Shown piece by piece: positions 2,352 to 26,669 of a stretch of DNA of 44,392 nucleotides (position 1 is the stretch's first letter; each line of letters opens with the position of its first letter). The stretch spans positions 1 to 44,392 of the forward strand of contig NIVC01003072.1 of assembly GCA_002269645.1 (NCBI GenBank), in the 5' to 3' direction. Both the position numbers and the translations under genes were made by a program. The DNA comes from Macrostomum lignano (Eukaryota). The notes under the pieces were generated by a model that saw nothing but the letters and a program-made list of their open reading frames with translations, was not told the origin of the DNA and made no database searches.

Positions 2352-3461
2352 CTACGCCTTGTGCCCATTGATCTCTGTGCCGTTTCGCCTGTAGAACTCG
2401 GACTGAACGATGCCGACGCGGCAATGCGCCCGATCCGGGGGGTCCAGCTGATTCGATAGCCGCTTGCCGTACACAGACGAGTAGAGAGTCGGTACCGGCT
2501 TTGAAATTTCCTGGAAATATCGTTATATCCAGGAACCGTGTTAAAACGGATCATCAACGTACCAAGCCGTTAAAATGTAATTATTTGCAGTGTAAATGTT
2601 TTGAACTTATAAAGTTCACTACTAGCCGTTACAAAACATTTAAATTACCTCCTGATGCACTTGGAGGCCTTGAGACTTTGCATGCTCCCTGTCGTCTCTG
2701 TGCAGCTTGGCATTGAAATCGCGCTCCTGGTGAAAAATCCTATCGTAGCCATAGGCCGAGTAGCGTTCCTGTGGGATGGGCGGTAAAGGCAATAGCTAGG
2801 GTGAGAGAGGAAATGTATTGAAATTTTAATCTATTTTTACTGTATACTGCGCTGCATCTAAGGTAGTTGTAGTCTTCAATTTCGCCTTTCCTTTATTTAT
2901 ATATCATCTATTTTCAAAGTCTCGTGGGTTTTAAAATAAAAGTAAATCACTTAAAACTGACAAAAAATTTACCAACTCTATATTATTTCGTCTGTTCTAA
3001 CTTTAGAGGGTTTAAGCCAGTATTACTTTAGGACAGCTGGGCATATAAAATGCTTATATATGGTCTGGAAGCTACTTTCATACTAGTGGCAAACAGGGGC
3101 GTAGGGAGGGGGGGGGATAAGGGGGGATGTATCCCCCCCCGAAGAGCCTGACCAAAACTTTTTTGTTGCCCTTTGTTGCTATACATGATACCATGTGACT
3201 CTGTCATAGCACTTTTACCTTGGTGTATCCCCCCCGTAGAAAATTCACCTTGGTGTATCCCCCCGTAGGAAATTCCTGGCTACGCCCCTGGTGGCAAAAT
3301 CTTACATTTTTATCTACGTTGAAATATGTACGTTCCCTCGGTGCATGGCGCTCTGGAGGGACAAAAGAAAATGAGGAAAGCTCGCAAGGGCGACCTCGCA
3401 AGACGAATTCGTCAGTATCCGTCTTTACGGGAATAACAAAATCGCTTTGCTCTTCTTCCAT
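2352..3461 (-). CDS. CFAP90: CFAP90/C5orf49-like cilia- and flagella-associated protein, about 144 aa, 3 exons
   Basis: Exons (-): 3461..3306, 2768..2649 (alternative acceptor 2795), 2510..2352, all phase 0, GT-AG. Translation includes LRGRPCELSSFSFVPPERHAPRERTYF, YDRIFHQERDFNAKLHRDDREHAKSQGLQVHQE and SSVYGKR...QSEFYRRNG. These match the C5orf49 motifs I recall (KLHRDDREHAKSLGLHV, SSVYGKR, FYRKN). Confidence 0.9.
3094..3290. mobile_element. Non-autonomous hAT-type MITE (197 bp) in CFAP90 intron 1
   Basis: TIRs CAGGGGCGTAG (3094) and CTACGCCCCTG (ends 3290); 8-bp TSD GTGGCAAA at 3086-3093 and 3291-3298. Confidence 0.9.
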
Positions 3462-3861
3462 TAGGAGCTTTGCTTCTCTTGTCAGTAGGAAAATACAAAG
3501 ACGCTGGTATAGATCAAACCGATGATTTGATTTTGTATATAGCCGAAAACATATTCAAATTTTAAACTGAATAGGAGCGACACTATTAGCTACAACAAGT
3601 AAAACAAAATCTTCTGAACAAAATTACTTTGCCCTTAATTCTATAGTAATAGCGCAAGTATCAAATAAATAAAAAGTTTTTTGATATAACAGATTGAAAA
3701 AAGAACAAATTTATGTAAGTATTTTTTTGTTTGGGGGAACGATTTCAAGTTTAATAAGACCCAAGAATGATCTATAGCTCACGGACTGTAAGGTAGTCTA
3801 GCAATTTTGGATACTTTGCGTGTGTTTAAAAATAAGACTACTAGATACTTTTTAAGAGGAA

Positions 3862-6800
3862 ATGAGCAGAAATTTTCCAACTTTGCAAGAGAAAGTTGGT
3901 AACGCTTCTTCGAGGTAATCTAATCTTCAATGTTTTTCATTTTAAGATATTCGTGTACTCCATATAATAAAAATGGTTTGTCGGTAGGTATCTATCTAGG
4001 TATGCGATCAATTTTACCTCTCTACTAAACATCCAATTTTTAGACATATGTTTTGTTTATTTGTCGACTGTTGCTTTTAAAAGGCTCGTACATCATTTAA
4101 GAAGAATTTACATTACTAACATTGTCTAGTCATTAAGTGCAGAACATCAGAATTCATATGGCATGTGCTAAACAAAAAACCTTATTAATATTACTTTTGG
4201 TCAACTGGTTTAAAATATAATTGTATATTAGTTGTCACTAGGTAATATATATATATCGATTTTTTATTTTATCAGTAATAGCTTTAATAATTGCAATAAT
4301 GCTTTTATAGCATTTTGTTTAATATCTTTGCTTTAGGTTGTTATGCTATTTATCAATAACTGCCATACCTTCTTAGGAATAAAAATTACTGAAAATCAAT
4401 TCTAACTTTTCCTCTTAAATTATGCACTTAAAGCTAATTTTCTAATTATGATTTAGCATAGAAAACTAAATTAAAAGTTAGACATTTTGCTTTGCATGGC
4501 TATCAAAATTAAAATGAAAGAAGTCTTTGAAAAAAAGCTATTTTTGCATTCAAAACCCAAATCAAGATCTGTGCAAGACCGCGTCAGCTCAGTGAGCCAA
4601 CGAGAGGCCCAAAATGTTCTTCGACTTCGCGTCAATCGAGTCTGCCTTGTACAGCAGCTCAATGTAGATCCCGTGGTTGATTACCTGAGACGTGAAGGTA
4701 TTCTCAGCGACACCGATGTTCGCTTCGTGTCCCGCGGTGCCAACAGGTCTGAGAAGACGCGAATGCTGCTTGACATGCTGCCCAGCAAGGATCCCAGCAC
4801 CCAGTGGTACAACAAGTTCAGGTGGGAATGTGAGCTGCAAGTATTGCCGAATGAACGCCCTTCTGTTCTTCGAATCTCTATTCTGAGAATCGCCCTCAAA
4901 TCTCTATTCTGAGAATCGCCCTCAAATCTCTATTCTGAGAATCGCCCTCGAATCTCTATTCTGAGAATCGCCCTCGAATCTCTATTCTGAGAATCGCCCT
5001 CGAATCTCTATTCTGAGAATCGCCCTCAAATCTCTGTTCTGAGAATCGCCCTCAAATCTCTGTTCTGAGAATCGCCCTCGAATCTCTATTCTGAAAACCA
5101 GCCCCCTAGATCTAATCTGGACCAGAGAATGGCCCTCTAGATCTAATCTACACCAGAGAATGGCCCTCTAGATCTAATCTACACCAGAGAATGGCCCTCT
5201 ACATTTAATCTGCACCAGAGAATCGCCCTCTACATTTAATCTGCACCAGAGAATCGCCCTCTAGATCTAATCTGCACCAGAGAATCGCCCTCTAGATCTA
5301 ATCTGCACCAGAGAATCGCCCTCTAGATCTAATCCACACCAGAGGAACCTCTAGAGCAAGCGATCTAGAAGCAAAGTCCCGTCACCTACCCAGGACGTCT
5401 CTATCGGCAACATCCACCGTCGACGCCACCACCGCTCGGAATCATCAAATCCTGGTTGACTTTCTAGACAGCACAAATCTAGCCAATCTGAAATCGAGTT
5501 CCACAGACTCAATGCAACACTCTGAGCAGCAGCAGCAGCAGCCGCCGCTGCCGCCGATTCAACCTCAAGAAGACGATCCGACGTCTGCAGAGCATCGTCA
5601 GCGTTGGAAGGCGCTACGCTCGGCGGCCAAGTCCAGACTGAGTCAGCTCGAAGCCAATCCGTCTATTCGATTGAGTCGCCTACCGGAGGACTTGCCCGAG
5701 CACCTGGCTCGAACTTACGAAGCCTGGACAGCTAACGGCGGCAGCGGTCGCTCCGCGGCCAAGCACGAGCGTCGATGCCTGTCGCGACTGCGAACCGCCG
5801 ACGAGTTCGCCTTGCAAGCCGCCGGTTCGGCCAATCCCGAACGACTCATGCTGGTCTGCTTCATTTCGCCGCTGCACCGTCTGCTGTGCGACATTCGCAA
5901 GCGTCATCTGGCTTATAAATACTTACTAGCCGATGCGCCTAGCCTTGGCAACGCCATAGCAACCGCGTTTGCTAACTTATCTACCGGGCCGGACGGTCGA
6001 CGACTTTTCACCGACGGTCGATGGTCGCGGTACGCGGCTACTAAGCTGGCAAATTTGGCCGGCCGACTGTTCGACTTTCTGGCCGGAGTCAATCTGTTTA
6101 GAGAGTGCGAGACAGTTGCCGGGTCTTTGTGCGACTATCTGAATAGGTGAGGCTGCTTAAGTATCTGAGCTGTCTGAAGTAAAACTTGTTTCACACGTTG
6201 TTAGTGTAACGCTCGGCGATCTAGTGATAAAATAATTCCATCACAACATCCGATGACTATGACCGACGGTGACATTCATTTGGGGCTTTTGTGCTAAAAT
6301 TAACAAAATTTTGGGTAAACGGCAGGAGTAACTATGACTTGATTTTTAAGGCTAAATGTCTCAGTACCTAATTAGTGCTATGTCTATTTTTGGGTTGGCA
6401 TTTTTGTGACTTACCTTGGCTAAGCCCCTCGCCAGGGTGTTGCACATGTATGGCCATGTTGCCATTTTATTACATCCATGTGACACACAAAGCCACCATA
6501 GTCTCTGTGACACAAGCGACTGTATATAACTCTCACTAATCTCCTTGAAAAGGTTCGGCGGCGACTGCGTGGAAGCCCTGCTGCCAACCTACCGCGCCAG
6601 CGTCAGGCTGATGGAAGCCCGGCTCAACAACGCCGACTACCAGCTGGCCGACGCTGCCAGTCAGGCGGCACAGGCCACGGCGGCCAGAATCAACCGCTTG
6701 TCGTTTGGCCAAAAAGTGATGGACAACCAGGCCCTGCTGCAGGCACAGATTGGTCGGATGCTGCTGGACCAGGGTAGCCTGGCGTCCGCGTTGGGTGCTT

Positions 6801-9800
6801 TTGGTAGCGCCATCTCGGTGAGTGCATGCTAATTTGTTTTTAGATTTTTTAGAATATGCAAGCATAAGAATATTAATTGATTAATTATTTGCCAGTGCGG
6901 GCCTGCAGAGTTTTCTTTTATTAAACAGGATTCATTATTATTTGTTTTACTTATAGTTTTAAATGATAAAATAAATGATCAATAACTCTATTAAATATTT
7001 AGGTATAGATAATTTTTTATTACGTTTTATTAATATTAAAAAAATAATTAAACGAAAAATAGTAAGTAAAAATTTAAATCAAAATGACTTTTTATTGAAT
7101 TAAAATTGTTAATTATACATAAATTGAGTCGTCTCTTGAGTAAATATAGAAAAGATTTCTTTTATACTTGAAAAATTTAATAAAATATCAATTTTAGACT
7201 GTGGATCTTAATGATACAGAGGCCGTCTTCAAAATTCTCTACCACGCTTTGCAACTTTACCTAACAAATTCCGATGAAGGAAAAGCGGAAAAATTAGCTG
7301 TTGCTTGCGTACAGCATGCTTAGTAAGTACTTTTTTGTAATTTCCATACCCGCTTGACTTAATATTAACATAAATTTTAATTTATTATTATTTCAGCAAA
7401 TTTTACAAAACAGAATCGCCGGAATACATCAAGTCGTTGTTAAACTTTGTCAAATTTTCAAACGCTTTCTGTCAAGATGATTTTGGAGTCGAAGTTGCTG
7501 TGGTAAGTTTGGTCACGGGTGTGCAAAGTTTTATTTTCTAGTGTTTGGAAATATTTCTCTAACATCCCTAGAAAACTATTTGGTCTCATATGTATGAAAA
7601 ACGAATTTTATTTTTACTGTATCGAAATTTATACGATGTCATTCTAAGAAGGAAACAAACCAAAGTCAGAAAATTTAGTTTTTTTAAGTAATAGTTATTT
7701 TAGTGTAATTTTTTTAGCTTTTAAGTAAGTAATTCGGTGCAATCTTAAGTATCTCATGGTTTAAAAACCATGTCAGTATCTTAAGATAGTCTGATGTAAA
7801 TTTTAAATAAGAATCGATTTGACATTGTACCGCCCTTCGTTCGAGAAACTTTCATTAACCGTATTAATCTAACATTCTAGAAACCATGCACAAATCCAAA
7901 TGTCGCGATCTTTGCAGAAGTTTATCTTCACCTAATAATATTCTACGAGCTAGTTTCAAGCATTTATTAATGAATACTAAATTATGTACTATAGTAAATA
8001 GTATAGTAAACGTCCTGGATATAGCATAGTAAATATCTGTGTAATTATCTGTAAATTAATCAGCACGTTAAATTTGTTATACTGTAGAAAATATTTTTAG
8101 AACTTTCTCGAAAACCAAGTCATATCTATAAATATACGGCAGGCGCATCGTCATATCTTTATCTTCCCCATTTTCTTTATTCGTTCCTAATACACCAATA
8201 AACAAAGGAACCACTGATTTCATTTGCTGACGAATGCTAACATCAATCCAACTAATTCCGCCAATGTCGTTCTGTTCTAACAAAATATAATTTTTAGATT
8301 ACACCTAATTCTTAGAAAATATCGCATCAGCTAAAAAACTTCGTTCTTTTCGTAAAAATTGGATCTCATTCTATAGGAAACTTATTCTCTCTTTCTAGGA
8401 AAAATCAATTCCGTTTCTAAGGCTAATTCTCACCTCATTCTTATAAAATTTAATAAATTTCCTATCCATCAAATTCCAGAACGCATCTTTATTCGCTCAG
8501 CTCATCCTGGGCTACCAGCACCCGCTACTAGCCGAAGTCCAGTCGCACCTGTCGTTGGCGCAGCTTCTACGGCTCCGTCATCGCAGCCGCCGCGGTCAGG
8601 GTGCAACTGCGGAGCCCCAAGAAGTTGTCGCTCACGTGGAAGCTTCTCTAGCCGCAGTCAGAATGAGCTCTGGCGAGTCGGCATCTCAGCATCCCAACGC
8701 TGCCTCCTTGATGACTAATCTAGCCCAAGCTGCTCGCCTAGCGAACCCCGCCATCCTGCCAGTTGAACTGCTTCAAGTCGCCATCGAATTCGGTAGAAAA
8801 TCTGTTGAAATTCTCTCGAATACCATCGGTCGGCACAGTCCGGCAGCTGTGCAAGCCAGAATCTGTCTGGGCAGACTTCTGGCCGATGTGCCTTCGGGGA
8901 GTACCGTCCGGAGGCTGAGCGGCTGGCTGATGAAGCTCTAGAAGCGCTGATTGACAGCCAACCAGCTCAAGGGCACCTGCTGCTCAGAGCTAAACTCCAG
9001 TTGGCTAAGTAGGCCATTTTTTAGTCTGTCAGATTTTTTATTCTGAGATTTTGAGTCTGAAATTTTTGAGTCTGAGGTTTTGAGTCTGTGAGATTTTGAG
9101 TCTGTGAGATTTTGAGTCTGGGTGATTTTGAGTCTGAGATGTTAAGTCTGGGATTTGGATACTGAGATTTTGAGTCTGTGAGATTTTGAATCTGGGAGAT
9201 TTTGAATCTGGGAGATTTTGAATCTGGGAGAGTTTGAGTCTGGGATTTTGAGTATGAGATTTTGAGTCTGTGAGATTTTGAGTGTGAAATTTTGAGTCTG
9301 TGAGATTTTGAGTCTGTCAAATTCTGAGTTTGAGATTTTGAATCTGGGTGATTTTTAGTCTCTGAGATTTGAGCCTTTGAGATTTTGAATCTGAGAGATT
9401 TTGAATCTATGAGATTTTGAATCTGGGAGAGTTTGAGTCTGGGATTTTGAGTCTGTGAGATTTTGAGTCTGGGTGATTTTTAGTCTCTGAGATTTGAGCC
9501 TTTGAGATTTTGAATCTGGGAGATTTTGAATCTGGGAGAGTTTGAGTCTGGGATTTTGAGTATGAGATTTTGAGTCTGTCAAATTCTGAGTCTGGGATTT
9601 TAAGTCTGTGAGATTTGAGTCTGGTTGATTTCGAATCTATGATATTTTGAGTCTGATATTTTGAGTCTGCTAGTCACTGCATGAGTCTGTCAATTTTAAT
9701 TGTTTAACTCGGCTATTAGATCAACATTTGGTAAACTTGGGTCATCTAATTGAGATTCAATAATTTAAATACTTTTTTCATCTCTAAAGGCTGCACCGAG

Positions 9801-12800
9801 CCGCCGGCAATCCCAAACGAGCCCTTGCCCTGGCCAATGACGTCATCGAACAGACTGAATGCTACGGCTCTTATATTCGATGGCTAGACCAGGCCTACAT
9901 TCTCGCTATTGAGTTGCTAAGCGAGTCCAAAGACTTGGCTGAAGCTGCTGCTGCAACGACGACAAGCGATGAGATGATGGCTAAACGGCAAGATTGGCTG
10001 AGCAGGCATCCGATGTCGCGGTCTGCTCAGGGCCTGGATTGGGCCGCTTTGCACGATCGACCCGACAAAGAGTTCTTTCGGCGATTCCGGGCCTGGGGCG
10101 ACGACAGGAAGGAACTGGTGAGGCAGGTCGCTGCCGCCGCAGCCGCTGCCGCTGCCACCACGGCAGATGGTCAGGGAGCTGAAGGCAGCAAAACTGAGTG
10201 AGTTTGAGCGCGCTCTAAACAGCTCTACCCTGGTCTGATTCTGTTAGAATGTGTTTTCACTCTGTGAATCAAGGTGTCTAGTTCGGTTAAGAACGTGTCT
10301 AGTTCGGTTAAGAACGTGTCTATCGGTTAAGATCGTGTCTAGTTCGGTTAAGAACGTGTCTAGTTCGGTTAAGAACGTGTCTATCAGTTAAGATCGTGTC
10401 TAGTTCGGTTAAGATCGTGTCTAGTTCGGTTAAGAACGTGTCTGGTTCGGTTAAGAACGTGTCTGGTTCGGTTAAGAACGTGTCTAGTTCGGTTAAGAAC
10501 GTGTCTAGTTCGGTTAAGAACGTGTCTAGTTCGGTTAAGAACGTGTCTAGTTCGGTTAAGAACGTGTCTAGTTCGTTTAAGAACGTGTCTGGTTAAGAAC
10601 GTGTCTGGTTAAAAACTCACTTTACCAAACATTCTTTTCAGACAAAATAAAGTCAAAGCAGCTCAAAACCCAGAGTCCAGAACTGCTGTTGACGGATCCG
10701 AGACGGCAGCTGAAGCAAAACAGCAACGCGTGATAAAATGTGCGATTTCTTTCAGTTTAAATTAAAAATATTTGTCCTTAAAAGGCTTTTTATATTAAGA
10801 AATCATCTTGTTTATCTTTAATTCCACAGTGCTGCTCATAGGCGATTCCGGAGTCGGGAAATCCTGCCTGTTGCGCAGATTTGCTGAAAACTCATTTGAC
10901 GAAAGTCAAAACGCGACGCCAACAATTGGTGTGAACTTCAAAATTGTTCAAAATGAAATCGATGGGTCAAGCATCAAGTGCCAGATCTGGGACACCGCTG
11001 GACAAGAGAGGTGATTCCTTGCATTTTTACTTGTGCGCACTTGCCTCTGATCAACCCCGAATCTCTACCCCCTAATGTACACTTATCTCTTACCTACCCC
11101 ATTCAATCTCTACCCCTCCAAATGTACACTTGTCTCTTATTAACCCATTCAATCTCTACCCCTTCCAAATGTACACTTGTCTCTTATCAACTCATTCAAT
11201 CTCTACCCCTTCCAAATGTACACTTGTCTCTTATCAACCCATTCAATCTCTACCCCTTCCAAATGTACACTTGTCTCTTATCAACTCATTCAATCTCTAC
11301 CCCTTCCAAATGTACACTTGTCTGACCAACCCCATTCAATCTCTACCCCTCCAAATGTACATTTGTCTCTTATCAACCCATTCAATCTCTACCCCTTAAT
11401 GTACACTTTCCTCTGACTTCAACAAAACTCCAGATTCCGCACAATAACATCATCCTACTACCGAGGCTGCGCCGGCGCTCTGCTGGTCTTCGACGCCTCG
11501 AACCGCGACAGCTTCGACAGCTGCGAGCGCTGGCTGCAGGAGCTGCGGGCCTCCGCGCCAGAGTCCGTGCACGCGGTTCTGGTGGCCAACAAGAGCGACT
11601 CGGATGAGGCCGCCGTGACTCAGGAGGAGGCTGACGAGTTCGCCAAGTCGCACGGCATCGAGCTGTGCTGGGGCGTCAGCGCCCGCACCGGACAGAATGT
11701 CGGCCAGGCATTCAGGGGCCTGCAGAGTCGGGTGCTGCAGAGCAAAGTTGATGGGTTAGTTATTGAGCTACCGAAGGTTTCAGAATAGAAAGCATTGCAA
11801 CACTATAGTCTCGCATAGCAACACGCTAGTCTCGCATGGCAACACGATACTCTCGCATGGTAACCAAGAACTTAGGGTTTCGCCTTCCCACAGACTGAGT
11901 TCAAATCAGGCTCCAATGAATTCAACTGACATGCGACAATTGCCTCAGTTGGTGCCTAAGAAAAGTGAAAATTCTAACGAACATATTGATTATCAGATAA
12001 AAGGTAAGCAGGATTGAACTTTTTTATTGTAGAAGGTAAAAATAAAGAATTATTGTATTACGCTCATTCAATTTATCATTCAGTTCTTCTAATTGGCGAC
12101 TCCGGTGTTGGAAAGTCCAGCTTGCTTCAGCGATTTGCAGACAAAGAATTTGATGCCACTAACGAAATGCCACAAACCATTGGAGTGGAATTTCGAGCTG
12201 TGAAAGACAATATTGATGGCTGTCGAGTCAAGAGTGTGTTCTGGGACACAGCTGGTGCGGAGAGGTAAGTTTGAGATGGAATTACGCTAACCTGAGAAGG
12301 CTTATATGCTAGACAGAGGCCTCACACCTGTTAGACTGGGGCTTCACACTTGTTAGACAGAGGCCTCACACCTGTTAGACTGGGGCTTTACACTTGTTAG
12401 ACAGAGGCCTCACACCTGTTAGACTGGGGCTTCACACCTGTTAGACAGAGGCCTCACACCTGTTAGACTGGGGCTTCACACCTGTTAGACAGAGGCCTCA
12501 CACCTGTTAGACTGGGGCTTCACACTTGTTAGACAGAGGCCTCACACCTGTTAGACTGGGGCTTCACACTTGTTAGACAGAGGCCTCACACCTGTTAGAC
12601 TGGGGCTTCACACCTGTTAGACAGAGGCCTCACACCTGTTAGACTGGGGCTTCACACCTGTTAGAGAGAGGCCTCACACATGTTAGACTGGGGCTTAACA
12701 CCTGTTAGACAGAGGCCTAACACTTGTTAGACAGAGGCCTAACACTTGTTAGACAGAGGCCTCACACCTGTTAGACTGGGGCTTCGCACATGTTAGACAG

Positions 12801-15800
12801 AGGCCTCACACCTGTTAGACTGGGGCCTCAAACCTGTTAGACAGAGGCCTCCCACGTGTTAGACAGAGGCCTCACACCTGTTAAACAGTGGCCTCACACC
12901 TGTTAGAGGCCTCACACCTGTTAGACAGAGGCCTCACACCTGTTAGACTGGGGCTTCACACTTGTTAGACAGAGGCCTCACACCTGTTAGACAGAGTCCT
13001 CACACCTGTTAGACAGAGGCCTCACACCTGTTAGACGGAGGCCTCACACCTGTTAGACAGAGGCCTCACACCTGTTAGACAGAGGTCTCACACCTGTTAG
13101 ACAGAGGTCTCACACCTGTTAGACAGAGGCCTCACACCTGTTAGACAGAGCCTCACACCTGTTAGACTGAGGCCTCACACCTGTTAGACTGGGGCTTCAC
13201 ACCTGTTAGACTGGGGCTTCACACCTGTTAGACAGAGACACCTGTTAGACTAGGGCCAAACCCATCCATAAATTACCCGACATCCGCAGGTTCCGCTCCA
13301 TCACGAGCGCCTACTACAGAGGCTGCGCCGGCGCTCTGCTGGTCTTCGACGCCTCGAACCGCGACAGCTTCGACAGCTGCGAGCGCTGGCTGCAGGAGCT
13401 GCGGGCCTCCGCGCCAGAGTCCGTGCACGTGGTTCTGGTGGCCAACAAGAGCGACTCGGATGAGGCCGCCGTGACTCAGGAGGAGGCTGACGAGTTCGCC
13501 AAGTCGCACGGCGTCGAGCTGTGCTGGGGCGTCAGCGCCCGCACCGGACAGAATGTCGGCCAGGCTTTCAGGGGCCTGCAGAGTCGGGTGCTGCAGAGCC
13601 AGAGCCAGCAATTCGGGTTGGTGTCTGGCCTTTGCAACAGCATTTAATCCCTTTAGCTATACATTCTCATCGTCATAGCAACACAACGTCATTCACATAG
13701 CAACAAAACTTCGTCCCCATGGCAGCACAACCTCAAACACAGCAACACAACTTCATCCCCATAGCAACACAAATTCATCCCCATAGCAACACAACTTTAT
13801 CCGCATAACAACGCAAATATTTTCTCTTTAAAACCGATTCCTAGTTTGGCACAGACCCAGCAGTCAAACGAATCGACTACTTTCGCTCCGAAGGCCATCA
13901 ATACGAGTAAATCTACTGAGCAGTCGAAGGAGTCTCCCATTTCGAAGCCAGCAGCAGTGGGACAGGCAAACCTGAACGATGATCGCTCTCCTGACTATGT
14001 GATAAAAAGTGAGATATAGCATCCTTGTCTTTACCATCTGACTGTTACGTGGGTGCGAAGTGAGATGGATATGCGGAGTGAGCTGGGTGCGGAGTGCGGC
14101 GGGTGTGGAGTGAGGTGGGTGTGGAGTGCGGCGGGTGTGGAGTGAGGTGGGTGTGGAGTGAGGTGTGTGTGGAGTGAGGTGGGTGCGGTGTGAGGTGGGT
14201 GTGGAGTGAGGTGGGTGCGGAGTGCGGCGGGTGTGGAGTGAGGTGGGTGTGGAGTGAGGTGGTGTGGAGTGAGCTGGGTGCGGAGTGCGGCGGGTGTGGA
14301 GTGAGGTGGGTGTGGAGTGAGGTGGGTGTGGAGTGCGGCGGGTGTGGAGTGAGGTGGGTGTGGAGTGAGCTGGGTGTGGAGTGAGCTGGGTGCGGAGTGC
14401 GGCGGGTGTGGAGTGAGGTGGGCGCGGGGTGAGGTGGGTGCGGAGTGAGGTGGGTGCGGAGTGAGGTGGGTGCGGAGTGAGGTGGGCGTGAAGTGGGGTG
14501 TGTGTGGAGTGAGGTGGGTGTGGAGTGAGGTGGGTGTGTAGTGAGGTGGGTTCGGAATGAGGTGAGTGCGGAGTGAGGTGGGTGCGGAGTGGAGTGAGGT
14601 TCGGAGGTGGGTGCAGAGTGAGGTGGGTGCAGAGTGAGGTGGGTGCAGAGTGAGGTGGGTGCAGAGTGAGGTGGGTGTGACAATGCTCACAATGCCCACA
14701 CCCACACGCAGCGGTGCTAATCGGAGACTCCGGCGTCGGCAAGTCCTGCCTGGTCCGCCAATTTATTGACCAGGAATTTGACGAGAGCCTCAAGGCAACG
14801 CCCACCATCGGAGTGGACTTTCGCGTGGTGAACAGCGACATTGACGGGTCGCGAGTGAAAACTCAGATTTGGGATACGGCAGGACAACAGAGGTGAGGTT
14901 GAAGTTGGATAGCTCGCTCTTTCCTTTATTAACTTTATTTCTGGACGAAATTGTGTTATAAAACCCATTAGATTTACACATAAGTTACTATCATTAACTC
15001 ATTAGACAGCAGGGACCTTAACACCTGGATCATAATAACTGAATCATGAATCTAGGCTCATAAACCTATATTAAAACACCGGAATCATGACACTCAAATT
15101 ATAAATCTTGGATCATAATTATCTGAATCATAACACCTCGATCATTACACCTGGATTATAACACCTGGATTATAACACCTGGATTATAACACCTGGATTA
15201 TAACACCTGGATCGTACCACCTGGATCATAATACCCGGATCATAACACCCGGATTAGAACACCTGGATCATAACACCTGGATCATAACACCTGGATCATA
15301 ATACCTGGATCATAACACCTGGATCATAAAACCTAAACCATAACACCCCTTAGACCGCCCTTCGCCCCTCCCCGACATCCGCAGGTTCCGCTCCATCACG
15401 AGCGCCTACTACCGAGGCTGCGCCGGCGCCCTGCTGATCTTCGACGCCTCGAACCGCGACAGCTTCGACAGCTGCGAGCGCTGGCTGCAGGAGCTGCGGG
15501 CCTCCGCGCCAGAGTCCACGCCCGTGGCTCTGGTGGCCAACAAGAGCGACTCGGATGAGGCCGCCGTGACTCAGGAGGAGGCTGACGTGTTCGCCAAGTC
15601 GCACGGCGTCGAGCTGTGCTGGGGCGTCAGCGCCCGCACCGGACAGAATGTCGGCCAGGCTTTCAGGGGCCTGCAGAGTCGCTGCCTCGCCCAGATGAAG
15701 CTTCAGAAGGCGGAGACAGCGCCGAAGGCGGCCAACGCGTCAATACGGATAGCAGAGATTGACAGCATGCTGGCGAGTGTCAAAGATATGAGTTCGTCGA

Positions 15801-17795
15801 ATTTCGATTCGAAAGTTTTGTCCAGATTCACCGTTGACAGTCAGCGGCAAAGCGCGCCGCCAGGTGCCAGCGTGGAGGAGCTGCCGTTGATTGAGTCCCA
15901 GACTGCGTCTGTGCCCGACAGGCCTGCTGTGCTCGTCAATGGTGATCTTGGGCGATTTTTAGGGCTTTTAAATAAGACACAAATGGCGCCAAACTAGACA
16001 CAAATGGCGCCAAACTAGACACTAAAGGCGTCAACCTAGACACAAATGGCGCCAAACTGAACACAAATGGCGCCAAACTAAACGATAAGAATCGATGGCG
16101 CCAAACAACTTTACGAGTATGTTTACCAATGATTAAACCGATCAACTCCCGCAGTAATCGTTGTTGGGAACGCTGGCGTTGGCAAGTCAAGCCTTCTGGC
16201 TCGCTTTGTAGGCGGCCAATTCAACGAATCGTATGCGCCGACAGTGGCCGCGAGTCTGCAGAGCCGACTGGTCAAGGTTGACGGGGTGCCGGTCCAATGC
16301 CAGATTTGGGACACTGCCGGTCAGGAGAGGTGAGGAGATTTTGACGTTCGCACGGTGGTGCGCGAAGGGATGTGTGGAGTGAGGTGGGCGCGGGGAGTGA
16401 GGTGGGTGCGGGGAGTGAGGTGGGCGCGGGGAGTGAGGTGGGTGCGGGGAGTGAGGCGGGTGCGGGGAGTGAGGCGGGTGCAGGAAAGTGGGGTGGGTGC
16501 AGGGAGTGAGGTGGGTGCAGGGAGTGAGGTGGGCGCAGGGAGTGAGGTGGGTGCAGGAAGTGAGGCAGCTGCAGGGAGTGAGGTGGGCGCAGGGAGTAAG
16601 GTAGGTGCAGGGAGTGGGGTGAGTGCAGATTGAGGTGGGTGCAGAGTGAGGTGGGCGCGGGGAGTGAGGTGGGTGCGGGGAGTGAGGTGGGCGCGGGGAG
16701 TGAGGTGGGTGCGGGGAGTGAGGTGGGCGCGGGGAGTGAGGTGGGTGCGGGGAGTGAGGCGGGTGCGGAAAGTGGGGTGGGTGCAGGGAGTGAGGTGGGT
16801 GCAGGGAGTGAGGTGGGCGCAGGGAGTGAGGTGGGTGCAGGAAGTGAGGTAGGTGCAGGGAGTGAGGTGGGCGCAGGGAGTAAGGTAGGTGCAGGGAGTG
16901 GGGTGGGTGCAGATTGAGGTGGGTGCAGAGTGAGGTGGGCGCGGGGAGTGAGGTGGGTGCGGGGAGTGAGGCGGGTGCGGAAAGTGGGGTGGGTGCAGGG
17001 AGTGAGGTGGGCGCAGGGAGTGAGGTGGGTGCAGGAAGTGAGGTAGGTGCAGGGAGTGAGGTGGGCGCAGGGAGTAAGGTAGGTGCAGGGAGTGGGGTGG
17101 GTGCAGATTGAGGTGGGTGCAGAGTGAGGTGGGTGCAGGGAGTGAGGTAGGTGCTAACAAAGTCCACCGCCATTACTCCCAGCCATCGCAGCAACTCGGA
17201 GGGCTACTACAGCGGCTGCCAGTGTGCTATGCTGGTCTATGACGTCACTGACGCGGACAGCCTCCGCGACTGCGAGGCCTGGCTGCAGCGACTGCGCCCG
17301 GCACAGGACGGCGACAGCGTCGGACTACCAGCCGACGCCCCCATCGCTCTGATCGGCAACAAGCTCGACCGCCGCGAGCTCCCTACGCCCTCCGGAGCTC
17401 AGTCCGGCCTGGCGCTGGCTCGGCGCCACGGCCTGGTTTGGCGCGAGGCAACGGCGCTAGACTCGGAGAGCGCCAGCGAAGCGTTCCTGTGCCTGCTGCG
17501 CGCTGTTCTACAGACCATGCATTCGCCAGAACAACTTCGGGATGCGGATTCTAAGAAACGCAAAGGCGAAAAAAACGCTAGCAGACGAAAGCGAAAGTCG
17601 AAGCAGAAGGCAAGAAACAGCGGTCGCGATGCCGCCGCCAAAGTTTCCGCCGTGAGGTTTGGCGGCACGGCGACGCTGACGGAATTTCCAGGCGTCGGAG
17701 ACAACGCGGCGACCACCCAAGATGACGACAATGAGGCTGCCTGGACGTCGGACTCCTCGCTAAGCAGCAGCAGCTCGGCCGAGTCAGCTGAGTAA
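3862..17795 (+). CDS. Predicted multidomain protein, about 1,800 aa: CARD - APPBP2-like TPR region - four tandem Rab-like GTPase domains (19 exons)
   Basis: Exons: 3862-3914, 4567-4821, 5394-6146, 6553-6817, 7198-7322, 7397-7502, 8480-9008 (needs +1 G at 8896-8899), 9790-10197, 10642-10739, 10830-11010, 11434-11754, 11894-12003, 12084-12264, 13290-13616, 13845-14008, 14712-14892, 15385-15941, 16155-16329, 17183-17795. All introns are GT-AG with matching phases; total 5403 nt including the corrected base. Exon 1 and the 10197/10642 junction are the least certain parts. Confidence 0.7.
4567..5480 (+). CDS. CARD (death-fold) domain, exon 2 plus start of exon 3 of the multidomain gene
   Basis: [66 protein letters not shown]|TSL...[10 protein letters not shown] follows the CARD consensus (LxxxRxxLvxxL.v..vlDyL...gvLs......I......r..k.r.LLd.Lp.kg....F). 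Confidence 0.85.
4868..5340. repeat. Compound intronic minisatellite: 26-bp unit, then 31-bp unit sharing the core GAGAATCGCCCTC
   Basis: Tandem CTGAGAATCGCCCTC(A/G)AATCTCTATT to about 5095, then CCAGAGAATCGCCCTCTAGATCTAATCTGCA. Confidence 0.95.
5590..10197 (+). CDS. APPBP2/PAT1-like TPR region (exons 3-8 of the multidomain gene)
   Basis: Collinear similarity to human APPBP2 as I recall it: RLSRLPEDL~IRSLPENI; [11 protein letters not shown]~KVLRALDKRHL; [16 protein letters not shown]~VRLLHVRNGNCKYHLG; [31 protein letters not shown]~KAEQLIKHAVYLARDHFGSKHPKYSDTLLDY; [17 protein letters not shown]~SVFGGKNIHVATAHEDL. Confidence 0.7.
6290..6452. mobile_element. Degraded relative of the CATACATGCGCAAC MITE family
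   Basis: Contains TTTGGGTAAACGGCAGGAGTAACTATGAC, identical to 28643-28671, and ends in GTTGCACATGTATG (6439-6452), a TIR variant. Left end and TSD not recognisable. Confidence 0.7.
9035..9690. repeat. Intronic minisatellite, about 10/19-20 bp units (GAGATTTTGAGTCTG(T/G))
   Basis: Tandem periodicity within intron 9009..9789. Confidence 0.95.
10263..10610. repeat. 21-bp minisatellite (GTGTCTAGTTCGGTTAAGAAC)
   Basis: Tandem periodicity. It fills the predicted intron 10198..10641 and explains ORF 10396..10596. Confidence 0.95.
10830..11754 (+). CDS. Rab-like GTPase domain 1 (exons 10830-11010 and 11434-11754)
   Basis: [22 protein letters not shown]|[19 protein letters not shown]. Resembles Rab1/Rab35-type sequences. 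Confidence 0.92.
11065..11410. repeat. 47-bp intronic minisatellite (CCAAATGTACACTTGTCTCTTATCAACCCATTCAATCTCTACCCCTT)
   Basis: Tandem periodicity in the intron splitting Rab domain 1. Confidence 0.95.
12084..13616 (+). CDS. Rab-like GTPase domain 2 (exons 12084-12264 and 13290-13616)
   Basis: [22 protein letters not shown]|[19 protein letters not shown]. Linked in frame to domain 1 by exon 11894-12003, which ends HIDYQIK|V. Confidence 0.92.
12312..13255. repeat. 22-bp minisatellite with two alternating variants (CACACCTGTTAGACAGAGGCCT / CACACCTGTTAGACTGGGGCTT), a 44-bp higher-order repeat
   Basis: Tandem periodicity in the intron splitting Rab domain 2. Confidence 0.95.
13670..13815. repeat. 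Short degenerate CATAGCAACACAA repeat; a similar short array lies at about 11805-11865
   Basis: Repeated CAT(A/G)GCAAC core in the introns after domains 1 and 2. Confidence 0.7.
14085..14680. repeat. G-rich minisatellite (GGAGTGAGGTGGGTG(T/C))
   Basis: Tandem periodicity. Source of the PHS/PT-rich spurious ORFs. Confidence 0.95.
14712..15690 (+). CDS. Rab-like GTPase domain 3 (exons 14712-14892 and start of 15385-15941)
   Basis: [22 protein letters not shown]|[19 protein letters not shown]. Linked to domain 2 by exon 13845-14008, which ends PDYVIK|T. Confidence 0.92.
15085..15345. repeat. 14-bp minisatellite (GGAT(T/C)ATAACACCT)
   Basis: Tandem periodicity in the intron splitting Rab domain 3. 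Confidence 0.9.
15975..16105. repeat. 21-bp minisatellite (AAACTAGACACAAATGGCGCC)
   Basis: About 5 imperfect tandem units in intron 15942..16154. Confidence 0.85.
16155..17795 (+). CDS. Rab-like GTPase domain 4 (divergent) plus basic/Ser-rich tail (exons 16155-16329 and 17183-17795)
   Basis: [23 protein letters not shown]|[20 protein letters not shown]. Followed by [21 protein letters not shown]; ends [10 protein letters not shown] with no C-terminal Cys. Confidence 0.88.
16372..17152. repeat. G-rich 18-bp minisatellite (GGGAGTGAGGTGGG(T/C)GC(A/G)) with higher-order blocks
   Basis: Tandem periodicity in the intron splitting Rab domain 4. Confidence 0.95.
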
Positions 17796-18049: not shown

Positions 18050-18640
18050 ACTATGGAATTCCCCTTTGCAAAACTAAAATAGCTATGGGATTCCCCTTTG
18101 CAAAACTAAAAAAACTATGGGATTCCCCTTTGCAAAACTAAAATAGCTATGGGATTCCCCTTTGCAAAACTAAAATAGCTATGGGATTCCCATTTGTAAA
18201 ACTAAAATAGCTATGGTATTCCCCTTTGCAAAACTAAAATAGCTATGGGATTCCCCTTTGCAAAACTAAAATAGCTATGGGATTCCCCTTTGCAAAACTA
18301 AAATAGCTATGGGATTCCCCTTTGCAAAACTAAAATAGCTATGGGATTCCCCTTTGCAAAACTAAAATAGCTATGGGATTCCCCTTTGCAAAACTAAAAT
18401 AGCTATGGAATTCCTGTTGTAAAACTAAAAAACCGACGGGATTCCCCTTTGAAGAACTAAAAAGTTATGGAATTTCCATTTGTAGAACCAAAAACAGCAA
18501 CCGAAATCCGGGTTCCCCTTTGCAAAACTAAAAATAGTTACGGGATTCCCCATTGTAAAGCTTAAATCAGCTACGGGATCCTATGTTAAAACTATAAATA
18601 AATAAGGGATTCCCCTTATGTAAATCCAAAACAACTACGG
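18050..18640. repeat. 32-bp minisatellite (ATGGGATTCCCCTTTGCAAAACTAAAATAGCT)
   Basis: Near-perfect core at 18080-18410 with degenerate flanks. Confidence 0.95.
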
Positions 18641-21667: not shown

Positions 21668-24600
21668 TCAATCATCCTCATCTCCGGCCTCGTTGTCTTC
21701 GGCGTCTCCACCGCCGCCTTCATCCTCGGCGTCGGCATCGGCAAAGTGCAGCACAACAGCCTCATCAACCTCTTCATCGGCGGCTTCCTTAGTGCCCCCC
21801 TGATCCCCATCGTCGCCAAGGAAATCCCACACTAAGATAGTATCGTCGTGGGACGATGAAACGATCTGAAATTCGTCGAATTGCAAGCGGAACACCCTGC
21901 CAGAGTGTTCGCTGAGTGTGACGATGCACAGCGCGTCGGCCGACGATCTGGGGTCAAGGGCGGCCTGCAGGTCCCACACTTTGATCTTGCCGTCGTAGGC
22001 GCCAGACACAATTCGTTTGGAGTCGAAACGGATGCAGCGGACCAGCTCTTCGTGCCCTGCAGGGGGATTAAGATAATAACTATCGTATCGGGAGGTGCCT
22101 TTGATGTTAACAGAAGAAGGTTCAATGAAAGTGGGGAGGTGCCTTTGATGTTTACCGAAAAAGGTTCAATGAAAGTGGGAAGGTGCCTTTGATGTTTACC
22201 GAAAAAGGTTCAATGAAAGTGGGAAGGTGCCTTTGATGTTTACCGAAAAAGGTTCAATGAAAGTCTGAAGGTGCCTTTGATGTTTACCGAAAAATGTTCA
22301 ATGAAAGTCGGGAGGTGCCTTTGATGTTTACCGAAAAAGGTTCAATGAAAGTCGGGAGGCGCCTTTGATGTTTACCGAAAAAGGTTAAATGAAAGTCGGG
22401 AGGTGCCTTTGATGTTTACCGAAAAAGGTTCAATGAAAGTCGGGAAAGTCTAGAGGTGCCTTTGAATTTTGCCGAAAAAGGTTTAATGAGAGTCGGGGTG
22501 CCTGGTGAAAGGTTCAATAAAAATCGGTCCGTTGATGCTTACCGATAAGGGTTCAATGAAAGGTTGGGGCGGCGCCTTTGAAGTTTGAAGTGAATCTACA
22601 GTTTCAAACTTACCATTGAGCACTCGCAGACAGATTCCGCTCTCGATATCCCACAGTCTGATAGAATTATCAGACGAGCCGCTAACAACCAGATTATCGC
22701 GATACTGCAAACAGGCGATGCCGCGCTTGTGACCGCTCAGGGTGCGCACAAATTCGCAGCTGGCAGTGTGCCAAACTTTAATAGTCCTATCGCCGGAAGC
22801 TGACACAATGTAGCGCGAATCGAAATCTACAACATTCACGGCGGCTCGGTGGCCTACTAGAACTCGTCTAAGCGCGATGTCGCTAGGCGAGTGCATGTCC
22901 CACACGGCTATGGATCTGTCCTTGGAGCACGTGACCATCAGGCCGTCGCAGAAGCGCAGATGGAGCACGGCCTCGCAATGATGATACAGTGTGTTCAACG
23001 GTTGGCCAGTGCGCACGTCCCAGACCCGCACTGTGCTGTCTGAGGAGCCGCTAATTATTATGTCATCGTCGTATTGGAGGCACAGTACGGAGCCCATATG
23101 GCTGGATAGCACCTGGTTTGTGTGATAATTGTATGATGGGGATATCGGTAAGGGAGATGCATTCACTAATCCCATAGTTTGATACTGATCCCAATTGATA
23201 ATCCCCTCGAGTGAGTAATAATCCCAATTGATAATCCTCTTTTGTGGTTAATAATCCCAATTGATAATCCTCTCTTGTGGTTTATAATCCCAATTGATAA
23301 TCCTCTCTTGTGGTTTATAATCCCAATTGATAATCCTCTCTTGTGGTTTATAATCCCAATTGATAATCCTCTCTTGTGGTTTATAATCCCAATCGATAAT
23401 CCCCTTCAGTGATTAATAATCCCAATTGATAATCCTCTCTTGTGGTTTATAATCCCAATTGATAATCCTCTCTTGTGGTTTATAATCCCAATTGATAATC
23501 CTCTCTTGTGGTTTATAATCCCAATTGATAATCCTCTCTTGTGGTTAATAATCCCAATTGATAATCCTCTCTTGTGGTTTATAATCCCAATTGATAATCC
23601 TCTCTTGTGGTTTATAATCCCAATTGATAATCCTCTCTTGTGGTTAATAATCCCAATTGATAATCCTCTCTTGTGGTTTATAATCCCAATTGATAATCCT
23701 CTCTTGTGGTTAATAATCCCAATTGATAATCCTCTCTTGTGGTTTATAATCCCAATTGATAATCCTCTCTTGTGGTTTATAATCCCAATTGATAATCCTC
23801 TCTTGTGGTTTATAATCCCAATCGATAATCCCCTCCAGTGATTAATAATCCCAATTGATAATCCTCTCTTGTGGTTTATAATCCCAATTGATAAACCTCT
23901 CTTGTGGTTTATAATCCCAATCGATAATCCCCTCCAGTGATTAATAATCCCAATCGATAATCCTCTCTTGTGGTTTATAATCCCAATTGATAATCCTCTC
24001 TTGTGGTTTATAATCCCAATCGATAATCCCCTCCAGTGATTAATTATCCCAATTGATAATCCCCTCTTGTGTTTTTATAATCCCAATTGATAAAATAACC
24101 TAAATCGATAATCACCTACGATTTTTTTGATTTGAATCCTCTACACAAAGATTAATTCTATATTATTATCCCCATTCCGAATCCCTTACCTTAGTACACT
24201 CCAGAGATTTACGATCCCACACTTTGATGGTGTTATCCCTTAGGCCGCTAATAATCTTGTCCTCGTCGTACTGCAGGCAATAAACTCCTTTGGAAGATTC
24301 GCTTCGGCATTGAATTCGACGCAATTTAAAACTGCCCTTGGCCCAGTTGCTCTCGATTCGCCTGATGTCGCTGAGAATCTTCGGGTACAGCTGCCTGTAG
24401 TGGCTGTCTGAACTGCCGACGTCGCTCTCCGCTCCGTCTCGCTGCGGCCGGCGCAGGTCTCGCAGCCAGCCTCTGCGGACGGCCAGCCCGCGCCACAGAT
24501 TGCTTCTGCGCACCTGCAAGCAAATTTTAAAGTACAGTGCGGTTTGTCTGGTTTGCCCAGCAACTGGGGATCTGGGAGGCTGGCCCAGCAACTGACACTC

Positions 24601-25578
24601 TGGGAGGCTGGCCCAGCAACTGACACTCTGGGAGGCTGGCCCAGCAAGCAGCAACTGAGGATCTGGGAGGCTGGCCCAGCAACTGACACTCTGGGAGGCT
24701 GGCCCAGAAACTGATCTGGGAGGCTGTTGGCCTAGCAACTGAGGATCTGGGAGGCTGGCCCAGCAACTGGGGATCTGGGAGGCTGGCCTAGCAACTGAGG
24801 ATCTGGGAGGCTGGCCCAGCAACTGGGGATCTGGGAGGCTGGCCCAGCAACTGACACTCTGTGAGGCTGGCTCAGCAACTGGGGATCTGGGAGGCTGGCC
24901 CAGCAACTGAGGATCTGGGAGGCTGGCCCAGCAACTGGGGATCTGGGAGGCTGGCCCAGCAACTGACACTCTGTGAGGCTGGCCCAGCAACTGGGGATCT
25001 GGGAGGCTGGCCCAGCAACTGAGGATCTGGGAGGCTGGCTGGCCCAGCAACTGAGGATCTGGGAGGCTGGCCCAGCAACTGAGGATCTGGGAGGCTGGCT
25101 GGCCCAGCAACTGAGGATCTGGGAGGCTGGGCCAGCAACTAGGGATCTGGGAGGCTGGCCCAGCAACTGAGGATCTGGGAGGCTGGGCCAGAAACTAAAC
25201 AGTTGCTAACCAAATATTTGAGTCCCCAAAGTCAATCCTCTCAACGCTCACCTGCGACTCAATCAGCTTACGCCACAGCAGGCCCTCAGATACAACCCGT
25301 CGCCACTCGCTGCACACCATCTCAGCAGAGGCCAGAGATTTTGCATCCAAACAGGCCAAGATTCGCTCAGCCAAATGATCCAAGCCACATGTTGGCAGTA
25401 CACTGATAAAGTCTCGCTGCAGCATGGGAGCTAAGTATTCCTGCACTTGGCCATGCTGATAATGCGACATACTGCCCAGTAACTGTTCAACAAAGTTCAC
25501 CTGTTCCATTTCTGACCAAGTGGAGAATTGCTCCAAGCAGACTGACTGCTCAGACAGAAATTGTTCAGACAGAGACAT
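21668..25578 (-). CDS. BTRC: beta-TrCP (F-box/WD40 protein; BTRC/FBXW11/slimb orthologue), about 512 aa, 4 coding exons
   Basis: Exons (-): 25578..25252, 24513..24190, 23112..22614, 22056..21668, GT-AG, in phase. D-domain ([14 protein letters not shown]...HYQHG), F-box ([17 protein letters not shown]), seven WD40 repeats ([43 protein letters not shown]). An additional upstream exon is possible (AG acceptor just 5' of EKAKYIM). Confidence 0.97.
22090..22560. repeat. 44-bp intronic minisatellite (GAGGTGCCTTTGATGTTTACCGAAAAAGGTTCAATGAAAGTCGG)
   Basis: Tandem periodicity in the last beta-TrCP intron. Confidence 0.95.
23183..24100. repeat. 33-bp intronic minisatellite (TATAATCCCAATTGATAATCCTCTCTTGTGGTT)
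   Basis: Tandem periodicity. Explains ORF 23440..23841 ([11 protein letters not shown])n. Confidence 0.95.
24553..25192. repeat. 28-32 bp intronic minisatellite (CTGGGAGGCTGGCCCAGCAACTGAGGAT)
   Basis: Tandem periodicity in intron 24514..25251. Confidence 0.95.
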
Positions 25579-26669
25579 GATGTACTTGGCTTTTTCTGGT
25601 ACAGCATAAATTCCAAGGTGCAGTATAGAGGCACATAGTTTAGTGTTCCAAAGGATGATACAAGTATAAAGAAATGAAAATTTTATCATCTATATTATTC
25701 AATTGTTTTATGTTAGCTATTATTGTAATTATATTATTAATTACAGATTGGAAAATGATTATTAATTCATAAAATTGAAAAACATCTAAACATTAGACTC
25801 TTAATGTTAGTCATATTTTAATTACTATTAAAAAAACCAGTTGTGAGTTTTTACTAGATATATATCATATTCTGGCTTAATTAAAATCTTTATCAATAAA
25901 TAAATAATTATAAAAATAACTTATGTACTATATTACACTACTATATAGTTAGTATATTTTCAGTTGAATGAGCATATAATAATATAGTTTGAATGTCTTT
26001 ATATTTATAGTTAGTTTGAAAAGAGTTTGGGAAATACTTTAAATTTGTAAGACCTGGGGCTATATAAATAATATTTAAATATTGGCGCAATTTTTAGTTT
26101 AGAGACATTGGCATTTTAGAATAAGAGCATCTTACATCTAATTCCTAGTAACCTAATATCTATTCTAGGTGGCAGTGTTAGGCAAAGTAAAAAATAAACT
26201 AGATAAAAATTTGGGATTGACCAACTATGATTTTTTCTTTTGTGCATGATTAGAACTAGACAATGCATGAAACAATGCATGACCATGAATTTTTTAACAT
26301 ACATTTTAAATTAGACATAGAACTATTTGTTTTAATACTACTAAGTCTAGCAATTTGTATTGATTTTTAAGCTTTGTTTTATTAAGTTTATTGTTTTACC
26401 ATATTTTATTATGTGGCTTTGTTATATCTATGCTGATTTGTAACAATTTTGGTTTGCTTTTCACAATCATATATTTTAGAATATTGTGCTACGACTTAAA
26501 AAGTAAGGTTTAAATCAGGAAATTCACAAATTATGATTGGCAATAGACAATATGTGATTTTTTTCCTCGTAATCATAGTTTTCATGATTGTGACTAAGCC
26601 TACAATCACAGTCAATCTCCAATAAAATGCTAAAATTAATAATTAAAAAAAATTTATATTAATAATAAT

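Follow-up and report, generated by a model that had tools for sequence, protein, structure and literature searches.

In the flatworm Macrostomum lignano, positions 3862 to 17795 (forward strand) of contig NIVC01003072.1 (assembly GCA_002269645.1, Mlig_3_7) most likely form one gene, with a product of about 1,800 residues. This protein starts with a CARD and continues with a full APPBP2-like TPR superhelix, three Rab1-like G domains and one Rab11-like G domain. The protein lacks a lipid anchor and is probably a soluble, multivalent GTP-switch scaffold; we place the probability of this reading as a whole at roughly 0.8. The window analyzed here comprises the first 44,392 nucleotides of the contig, and window and contig positions are identical, as contig positions 1-27795 match the window without a single difference. 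When a composite protein of 1,800 residues was mapped onto the window, 19 exons with GT..AG borders and a single frame break were found. The four G domains are designated D1 to D4, the exons encoding their first and second halves are marked a and b, and the linker exons are named E0, L1 and L2. Three genomic copies of the locus were compared: the window copy, L001 on contig NIVC01000483.1 and L002, which is located in reverse orientation at NIVC01003072.1:56782-84581.

The chain of G domains is encoded by eleven exons between 10642 and 17795. Upon splicing, these exons give one open frame of 968 codons, which ends at a TAA stop (17793-17795), and the same exon borders were recovered by an independent greedy spliced alignment. 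D1 to D4 each correspond to a full-length Ras-family G domain (PF00071, E-values from 1e-39 to 7e-50, model positions about 1-160 of 162). The chain begins with E0 (10642..10739; QNKVKAAQ...QQRVIK), which provides the start of beta-strand 1 of D1 and contains no in-frame ATG. D1 is split into an exon with the P-loop, switch I and the DTAGQE motif (10830..11010) and an exon with NKSD and SAR (11434..11754), which ends in the weak fusion donor TGG/GTTAGT (the slash marks the exon border). It is followed by L1 (11894..12003; ending in DYQIK), the sole linker having in-frame ATGs (11916 and 11931). The first-half exon of D2 (12084..12264) encodes the G3 motif DTAGAE, with an alanine in place of the catalytic glutamine, and the second-half exon (13290..13616) again ends in a weak fusion donor, CGG/GTTGGT. 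L2 (13845..14008; ending in DYVIK), which has a TAG acceptor and no in-frame ATG, leads to the first-half exon of D3 (14712..14892) with the G3 motif DTAGQQ. The second-half exon of D3 (15385..15941; donor ATG/GTGATC) carries an open extension of 85 codons, which constitutes the third linker. D4 is encoded by 16155..16329, which contains GNAGVGKS, and by 17183..17795, which provides the Rab11-like second half with the G5 motif TALD, a basic stretch, an acidic serine-rich tail and the TAA stop, but no cysteine prenylation motif. The linkers between the Rab domains are polar and roughly 30-90 residues long. A mini-exon belonging to D4 itself (ATGGCGCCAAACAACTTTACGA followed by GTATGT near 16093-16114, in phase with 16155) was considered and rejected as contrived, because it would need an intron of ~40 nt, whereas the shortest introns of the gene measure 74-90 nt, and because it is absent from all deposited models.

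The linker frames are open beyond chance expectation. Among 20,000 shuffles per segment, the frame was open in fractions of 0.22 for E0, 0.06 for L1, 0.066 for L2 and 0.028 for the D3b extension, the product of which is 2.5e-5, and the other two frames of each linker segment contain two to five stops. A first-pass annotation of this DNA had proposed that four Rab domains are joined in frame via linker exons, and this proposal holds: the five junctions concerned (11754/11894, 12003/12084, 13616/13845, 14008/14712 and 15941/16155) all have GT..AG borders, and the 968-codon frame matches a deposited coding sequence (CDS) derived from RNA-seq data. This is GenBank PAA53531.1 (BOX15_Mlig031168g1, 1,043 residues, CDS 9974-17795; UniProt A0A267DW32, 'hypothetical protein'), which represents the same locus and splice chain and whose residues 76-1043 are identical to the 968-residue chain. 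The BOX15 models are not predicted ab initio but were obtained from a StringTie/TACO RNA-seq assembly and a de novo transcriptome, followed by TBONE and an open reading frame (ORF) call with TransDecoder (PMC5730564). TBONE cuts transcriptional units at experimentally mapped spliced-leader (SL) and poly(A) sites (PMC5730564), and the annotation cut in this way keeps one gene across 9974-17795. Owing to the frame break at 8897-8900, the GenBank CDS starts at the internal methionine at 9974 and does not cover the CARD/TPR part. A single-sequence AlphaFold2 prediction of PAA53531.1, made without an alignment, reached a mean pLDDT of 44.5 and a pTM of 0.30; it was uninformative and was not used.

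Two further transcript-derived models, which stem from the two other genomic copies, both contain the equivalent of junction 11754/11894. The model from the NIVC01000483.1 copy (P0013) ends in KLMD and a stop at the window equivalent of 11898. The only route to this end is the joining of 11754 to 11894 in the frame that is shifted by the 1-nt deletion in D1 of that copy. The GenBank model from the inverted copy L002 (P0010) uses the equivalents of donor 11754 and acceptor 11894 and then enters a transposon. Both models comprise the CARD domain through D1 in one CDS and thereby substantiate the fusion to the upstream exons, on which the first-pass annotation had been hedged. UniProt models from an earlier assembly (P0001, P0122, P0123) link the domains likewise. 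The UniProt entries A0A1I8FWW3 and A0A1I8FYK8 ('CARD domain-containing protein', M. lignano) belong to the same locus but are mis-spliced around D1.

Judged by their sequences, D1 to D3 are Rab1-like and D4 is Rab11-like. In a PDB search with D1 and D4 as queries, the top matches were all Rabs: D1 matched Rab1A/B best (165 bits), followed by Rab35, Rab10 and Rab8, and D4 matched Rab11A best (106 bits), with a G5 motif of the SALD type like that of Rab11. An alignment with human Rab1A revealed the G1 motif GDSGVGKS in D1 to D3 and GNAGVGKS in D4, and the switch-I threonine is kept in all four domains. The G3 motif reads DTAGQE in D1 and D4, DTAGAE in D2, where the catalytic glutamine is replaced by alanine, and DTAGQQ in D3; G4 is NKSD in D1 to D3 and NKLD in D4, and G5 is SAR in D1 to D3 and TAL in D4. 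The RabF motifs are present in D1 to D3 (IGVNF/IGVEF/IGVDF, IWDTAG, RFR(T/S)IT, YYRGC and LVFDAS); in D4, RabF1, F3 and F4 as well as the switch II region are degenerate. G1 to G5 of canonical Rab1 and Rab11 are common to all four domains and the RabF motifs to D1 to D3. In contrast to canonical Rabs, D1 to D3 have a two-residue insertion ahead of switch I and no free C-terminus, and a cysteine prenylation motif (CC, CXC, CCXX or CXXX) is absent from the end of the spliced M. lignano protein. The lack of a Rab CC/CXC end, which had been noted before for D1 to D3, extends to D4, as no such tail follows any of the four domains. The read-through stops are located at 11788, 13647 and 15997, as the first-pass annotation had placed them. 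Reading through the second-half exon of D2 (13617-13647, donor 13617 unused) would give a product ending in GLCNSI, the last four residues of which form a CXXX (CAAX-like) box; the corresponding end in L002 is LVFGLCNSI followed by a stop. This CNSI box may be a relic of an ancestral Rab tail or the lipidation signal of a two-domain isoform.

Single-domain Rabs consist of ~200 residues, whereas four G domains are found here in a chain of 968 residues, or about 1,800 with the N-terminal module. The large Rabs RAB44, RAB45/RASEF and RAB46/CRACR2A are likewise long proteins with a Rab-type G domain C-terminal of other modules (PMC8303950). However, they consist of EF-hands and a coiled coil followed by one Rab domain (PMC8303950), whereas the M. 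lignano protein has a CARD and TPRs followed by four, and Pfam detected no EF-hand in it. Membership in the ROCO (Roc-COR) family is not indicated by Pfam either, as no COR match was obtained and each domain scores higher with the Ras model than with the Roc model. Miro and EngA/Der also contain more than one G domain per polypeptide, but their G domains are two in number, are not of the Rab type and are combined with other accessory domains.

The N-terminal module is encoded by the eight exons upstream of E0. Exon 1 (3862..3914), which holds the start codon, was located by tblastn of P0010 and P0001 and by spliced alignment, and the CARD-domain exon (4567..4821, protein residues about 18-103) by Pfam and spliced alignment. 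A linker and the beginning of the APPBP2-like TPR body lie on 5394..6146 (tblastn, profile and spliced alignment). The TPR body continues on 6553..6817, 7198..7322 and 7397..7502, all found by spliced alignment, and on 8480..9008, in which spliced alignment and copy comparison revealed the 1-nt frame break at 8897-8900. The final exon of the module (9790..10197, donor GA/GTGAGT) contains the start codon of the GenBank CDS at 9974 (MMAKRQDW). Pfam assigned a CARD domain to residues 38-106 and gave a weak TPR signal. In an exhaustive HMMER search with P0013, which includes D1, matches to Rabs dominated, and six N-terminal homologues surfaced. Relatives from Owenia (annelid; A0A8S4N315), Lingula (brachiopod; XP_013395164, 'amyloid protein-binding protein 2'), the gastropods Babylonia and Physella and the nemertean Tubulanus (the last three uncharacterized) have 790-850 residues and can be aligned over their full length with residues 1-830 (phmmer E-values 1e-54 to 2e-38). 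These spiralian proteins have the CARD, the spacer and the full TPR body in common with the M. lignano protein, contain no G domain and end where the Rab chain begins; the Macrostomum protein runs 968 residues past this point. Within the CARD and APPBP2-like set, the CARD was detected in seven of seven members and the TPR in five of seven. A word-index search with the 832-residue N-terminal module returned M. lignano only.

A profile built from the alignment of the relatives matches residues 40-574 of human APPBP2 (8JAL chain A) with an E-value of 9e-42, and kinesin light chain TPRs were matched weakly by the same profile. APPBP2 is the substrate receptor of a Cullin-2 ligase for R-x-x-G C-degrons (PDB 8JAL; PMC10614623). 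Human APPBP2 has the homologous superhelix of eleven TPRs, but its N-terminus carries a VHL box, and both the CARD and the G domains are missing. Because the relatives lack Rab domains and end at the start of the chain, the CARD/TPR module is an older spiralian gene, to which the Rab array was added at the 3' end in the Macrostomum lineage. A fragment of 386 residues (P0137, UniParc UPI0007A1364B) is 43% identical to residues 3-340, which cover the CARD and the start of the TPR body. The nearness of its accession to that of an M. lignano entry suggests that it is a second, more distant CARD-APPBP2-like paralog of M. lignano; its organism is not confirmed.

The locus could also be read as four separate tandem Rab genes, maybe an operon resolved by SL trans-splicing, with the linker exons as their own first exons and the chain as a product of transcript assembly, which we consider very improbable. 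SL trans-splicing takes place in M. lignano, with operons of up to nine genes and a spacing of about 100 bp (PMC8629364), and the gap between the read-through stops and the next linker exons is only about 100-200 bp. The fusion donors are weak, the high identity of the D1 to D3 second-half exons (91-95%) can confuse short-read assemblers, and the in-frame ATGs of L1 make a D2-first product formally possible. However, each downstream cistron of an operon would require a usable start codon, and in-frame ATGs are present in L1 only; they are absent from E0, L2 and D4a and from the sequence upstream of these exons up to the nearest stop. The spliced leader, which is 35 nt long, ends in an ATG (PMC8629364), but this ATG does not match the frame at any of the three fusion acceptors, where it would start a 12-residue peptide (11894), a 22-residue peptide (13845) or a methionine followed immediately by TAA (16155). 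As D1, D3 and D4 have no start codon of their own and the SL cannot provide one, the operon reading fails; a D2-D4 product from an internal trans-splice at L1 may occur as a minor form. Separate genes are also difficult to reconcile with a pipeline that is meant to split operons at mapped SL and poly(A) sites but kept the locus as one gene, with the absence of AATAAA and ATTAAA between D1 and L1 and between D2 and L2, and with the lack of a CC/CXC tail in every unit. Junction 11754/11894 is present in the two additional, independent models P0013 and P0010, and the sequences flanking the junctions are unique, so that exon similarity is unable to create them. An artefact of the genome assembly was rejected as well, as the same four-unit order is found in the window, L001 and L002 and in the gene models from the earlier assembly.

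Several points weigh against the reading as one gene with a functional four-domain product. The fusion donors GTTAGT (11755), GTTGGT (13617) and GTGATC (15942) deviate from the donor consensus of M. lignano, GT[G/A]AG, and L2 has a TAG instead of the consensus CAG acceptor (PMC8629364); the fusion donors are also weaker than most unit-internal donors (e.g., GTAAGT, GTGAGG, GTGAGA). Splicing is therefore possibly partial. The evidence for junctions 13616/13845 and 15941/16155 consists of the deposited model, which derives from short reads, and of the start-codon argument. Amino acid evolution in the linker exons is neutral, none of the assembled copies is free of a lesion in the 1,800-residue ORF, and the functional part of the reading is one that we infer. 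The chain might be real yet not constitutive, and partial use of the donors would then yield a ladder of products consisting of the CARD-TPR part and one, two, three or four Rab domains; we regard this as possible, though on the unlikely side. Retained introns would end these products at 11788, 13647 or 15997, and the form with two domains would carry CNSI, possibly a CAAX-type lipidation box, at its end. GTTAGT and GTTGGT both have a T at +3, which departs from the consensus, the read-through tails are short and closed, the CNSI end after D2 is kept in L002, and the transposon at the L1 acceptor of L002 already gives the annotated one-domain product P0010. On the other hand, GenBank holds one CDS per locus after filtering, and CNSI is non-canonical as a Rab motif and maybe a relic. 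It is improbable, in our view, that the locus is a decaying duplicate whose full ORF is untranslated in the window copy and perhaps in all copies, the chain being a transcribed relic. At least one frame-breaking lesion is present in each of the three assembled copies. The window has four G residues at 8897-8900 where L001 and L002 have five, which causes a frameshift within the TPR module and forced the GenBank CDS to the internal methionine; L001 has a 1-nt deletion in D1b as well as a 4-nt deletion and a G>A exchange in the P-loop exon D3a; and L002 has a miniature inverted-repeat transposable element at the L1 acceptor. M. lignano has been described as a hidden polyploid with many redundant copies (PMC10468722). 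The lesions may be PacBio errors or real decay. However, they differ among the copies, and two of them are single-base differences at G runs, which are typical PacBio consensus errors. The 968-codon chain is intact in the window and in L002, without exon indels and with the low pN/pS of its G domains given below, and the locus is transcribed and spliced (PMC5730564).

For the one-gene reading, the repeat structure of the chain offers a plausible origin. The repeat unit consists of a short 5' exon ending in DYxIK and the G-domain exons a and b, and such units are what one would expect if a Rab gene of three exons had been duplicated in tandem. Fusion relies on a GT donor a few codons before each old stop, which is spliced in cis to the former first exon of the next unit with matching phases; for unit 4, the linker is simply the long extension of exon 3b. 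Gene conversion would subsequently homogenize one exon per unit. The first-half exons of D1 to D3 (10830-11010, 12084-12264, 14712-14892) are 63-68% identical at the DNA level, with a GC content at third codon positions (GC3) of 0.48-0.60, whereas the second-half exons (11434-11746, 13290-13602, 15385-15697) are 91-95% identical, with a GC3 of 0.84-0.90. In addition, D2 and D3 have the last 13 intron bases in common (cgacatccgcag). This mosaic of first- and second-half exons is best accounted for by gene conversion limited to the second exon of each unit, which appears to be GC-biased. A comparison of the window with L002 revealed no indels in the chain exons and a pN/pS of 0.31 in the G-domain exons, as against about 1.0 in the three linker exons. 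These values show purifying selection on the G-domain exons, and the linkers behave as spacers whose sequence is unconstrained.

The same comparison showed that D3b to D4b differ by 0-0.4% and the 5' half of the gene by 2-6%, which suggests conversion between the loci as well. The whole block of CFAP90, the CARD-Rab gene and the beta-TrCP gene is present twice on NIVC01003072.1 in inverted, tail-to-tail orientation (1-27795 and 56782-84581); either this is a real inverted segmental duplication followed by conversion, or homeologous copies were wrongly joined when the polyploid genome was assembled. A Tc1/mariner-like element is located at 26670-28815, with terminal repeats at 26674-26760 (+) and 28810-28736 (-) and broken ORFs for a helix-turn-helix domain and DDE_3 at 28007-28582 and 28742-29287. 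A transposase-less derivative of about 330 bp lies in L002 (17700-18005), exactly at the L1 acceptor, and its target duplication CACAGAT copies this acceptor. As the acceptor is duplicated, the GenBank model P0010 enters the element and stops, whereas the UniProt model P0001 takes the downstream duplicate. The C-terminal exon of P0010 (FIHAQQSAESADPADRFGGQSRKSQKCPPKK followed by a stop) was considered as evidence for a second isoform and rejected, as it is the terminal repeat of the transposon and matches 26674-26760 and 28810-28736.

Nearly every intron of more than about 200 bp in this gene is filled by a minisatellite of its own, with periods of 14-47 bp and up to 44 copies. Minisatellites were found at 9018-9669, 10274-10594, 11038-11408, 12310-13237, 14075-14679, 15019-15347, 15975-16080, 16376-17154 and 18051-18493, and those at 14075-14679 and 16376-17154 have the core GGAGTGAGGTGGGTG in common. 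The gene is flanked by CFAP90 (2352-3542), a beta-TrCP-type F-box/WD40 gene (21668-25584) and a gene of the sodium:dicarboxylate symporter family (around 35.8-40.5 kb), all three of which are encoded on the reverse strand.

The first-pass annotation had called four G domains in one protein highly unusual, which stands with respect to the literature searched but not with respect to the databases, which contain uncharacterized single ORFs encoding between three and eight Rab domains. The tandem G domains of EngA have been described as one of a kind (PMC4245960), and literature searches for proteins with tandem or multiple Rab domains yielded EngA papers and noise only. The identifiers Mlig031168 and Mlig018981 are absent from the full texts searched and from two supplements of PMC5816591, and no paper describing the CARD-TPR-four-Rab architecture was found. 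Among the database entries, P0002 contains eight Rab-like domains in one uninterrupted ORF of 4,905 nt on a metagenomic contig. P0003 contains seven Rab domains, and its gene range is exactly the CDS length, yet it gave no translation with the code applied; the contig, which also encodes a eukaryote-type ribosomal protein, probably uses a non-standard genetic code. The rotifer Rotaria socialis has a protein with five complete Rab domains and an N-terminal fragment (P0004), in which single exons lead from a domain end across the linker into the following domain, and a protein of Stentor coeruleus (P0018) has three Rab domains. Like the flatworm chain, these four ORFs have short polar linkers that begin with (D)Y(D)xLxK and no cysteine tail. 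However, they are about 30% identical to it and lack a CARD or TPR module, and the multi-Rab ORFs and the flatworm chain are therefore probably independent inventions. Several Rab-like stretches are also found in a 'GTP-binding protein' of 2,322 residues, which belongs to a gammaproteobacterial metagenome-assembled genome (P0149, HEV2614272.1; four stretches) and in a 1,706-residue protein of Blattella germanica (P0142, PSN49720.1; six stretches); multi-Rab-like chains may thus reach bacteria, or these entries may be contaminant sequences.

As the P-loop, the switch-I threonine, DxxG and NKxD are kept, D1 to D4 probably bind guanine nucleotide, and the exchange of glutamine for alanine in D2 probably locks this domain in the GTP form. 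A geranylgeranyl anchor is absent, and since the domains are unable to mark membranes without a lipid anchor, the protein probably acts as a soluble multivalent GTP-switch scaffold. A single chain would present several surfaces of the Rab1 or Rab11 type to effectors or regulators, and the occupancy of the array would be coupled to the peptide-binding TPR body and to CARD-CARD oligomerization, which would recruit caspases or adaptors. By analogy with the integrated domains of plant nucleotide-binding leucine-rich repeat receptors, it can be speculated that the protein is a CARD-coupled sensor whose anchorless Rab1- and Rab11-like domains act as integrated decoys, an idea to which we give little credence. 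If it were true, the array would be engaged by factors that target Rab1 or Rab11 through binding or modification, be they effectors of pathogens or endogenous regulators, and oligomerization of the CARD would turn this contact into caspase or adaptor signaling.

The gene model itself is already public, unnamed and unstudied, and the finding at the sequence level is a rediscovery. New are the full architecture, the evidence that rules out an operon and the connection with a larger set of undescribed multi-Rab ORFs. RNA interference and transgenesis are established in M. lignano (PMC5730564), which makes a reuse of Rab surfaces directly testable. The locus is also a clean example of a tandem gene array turning into one gene. 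Rab GTPases are known as single-domain, lipid-anchored switches that determine membrane identity. Four Rabs without an anchor, joined to a death-fold domain and a peptide-recognizing TPR body, make this mode of action impossible and hint at the reuse of Rab surfaces as soluble, multivalent interaction modules. It is a further speculation that anchorless multi-Rab chains, which also occur in ciliate-like protists and rotifers, represent an unrecognized class of soluble multivalent Rab-surface proteins. The flatworm gene offers a way into an overlooked architecture, of which ORFs with three to eight domains are found in protists and rotifers.

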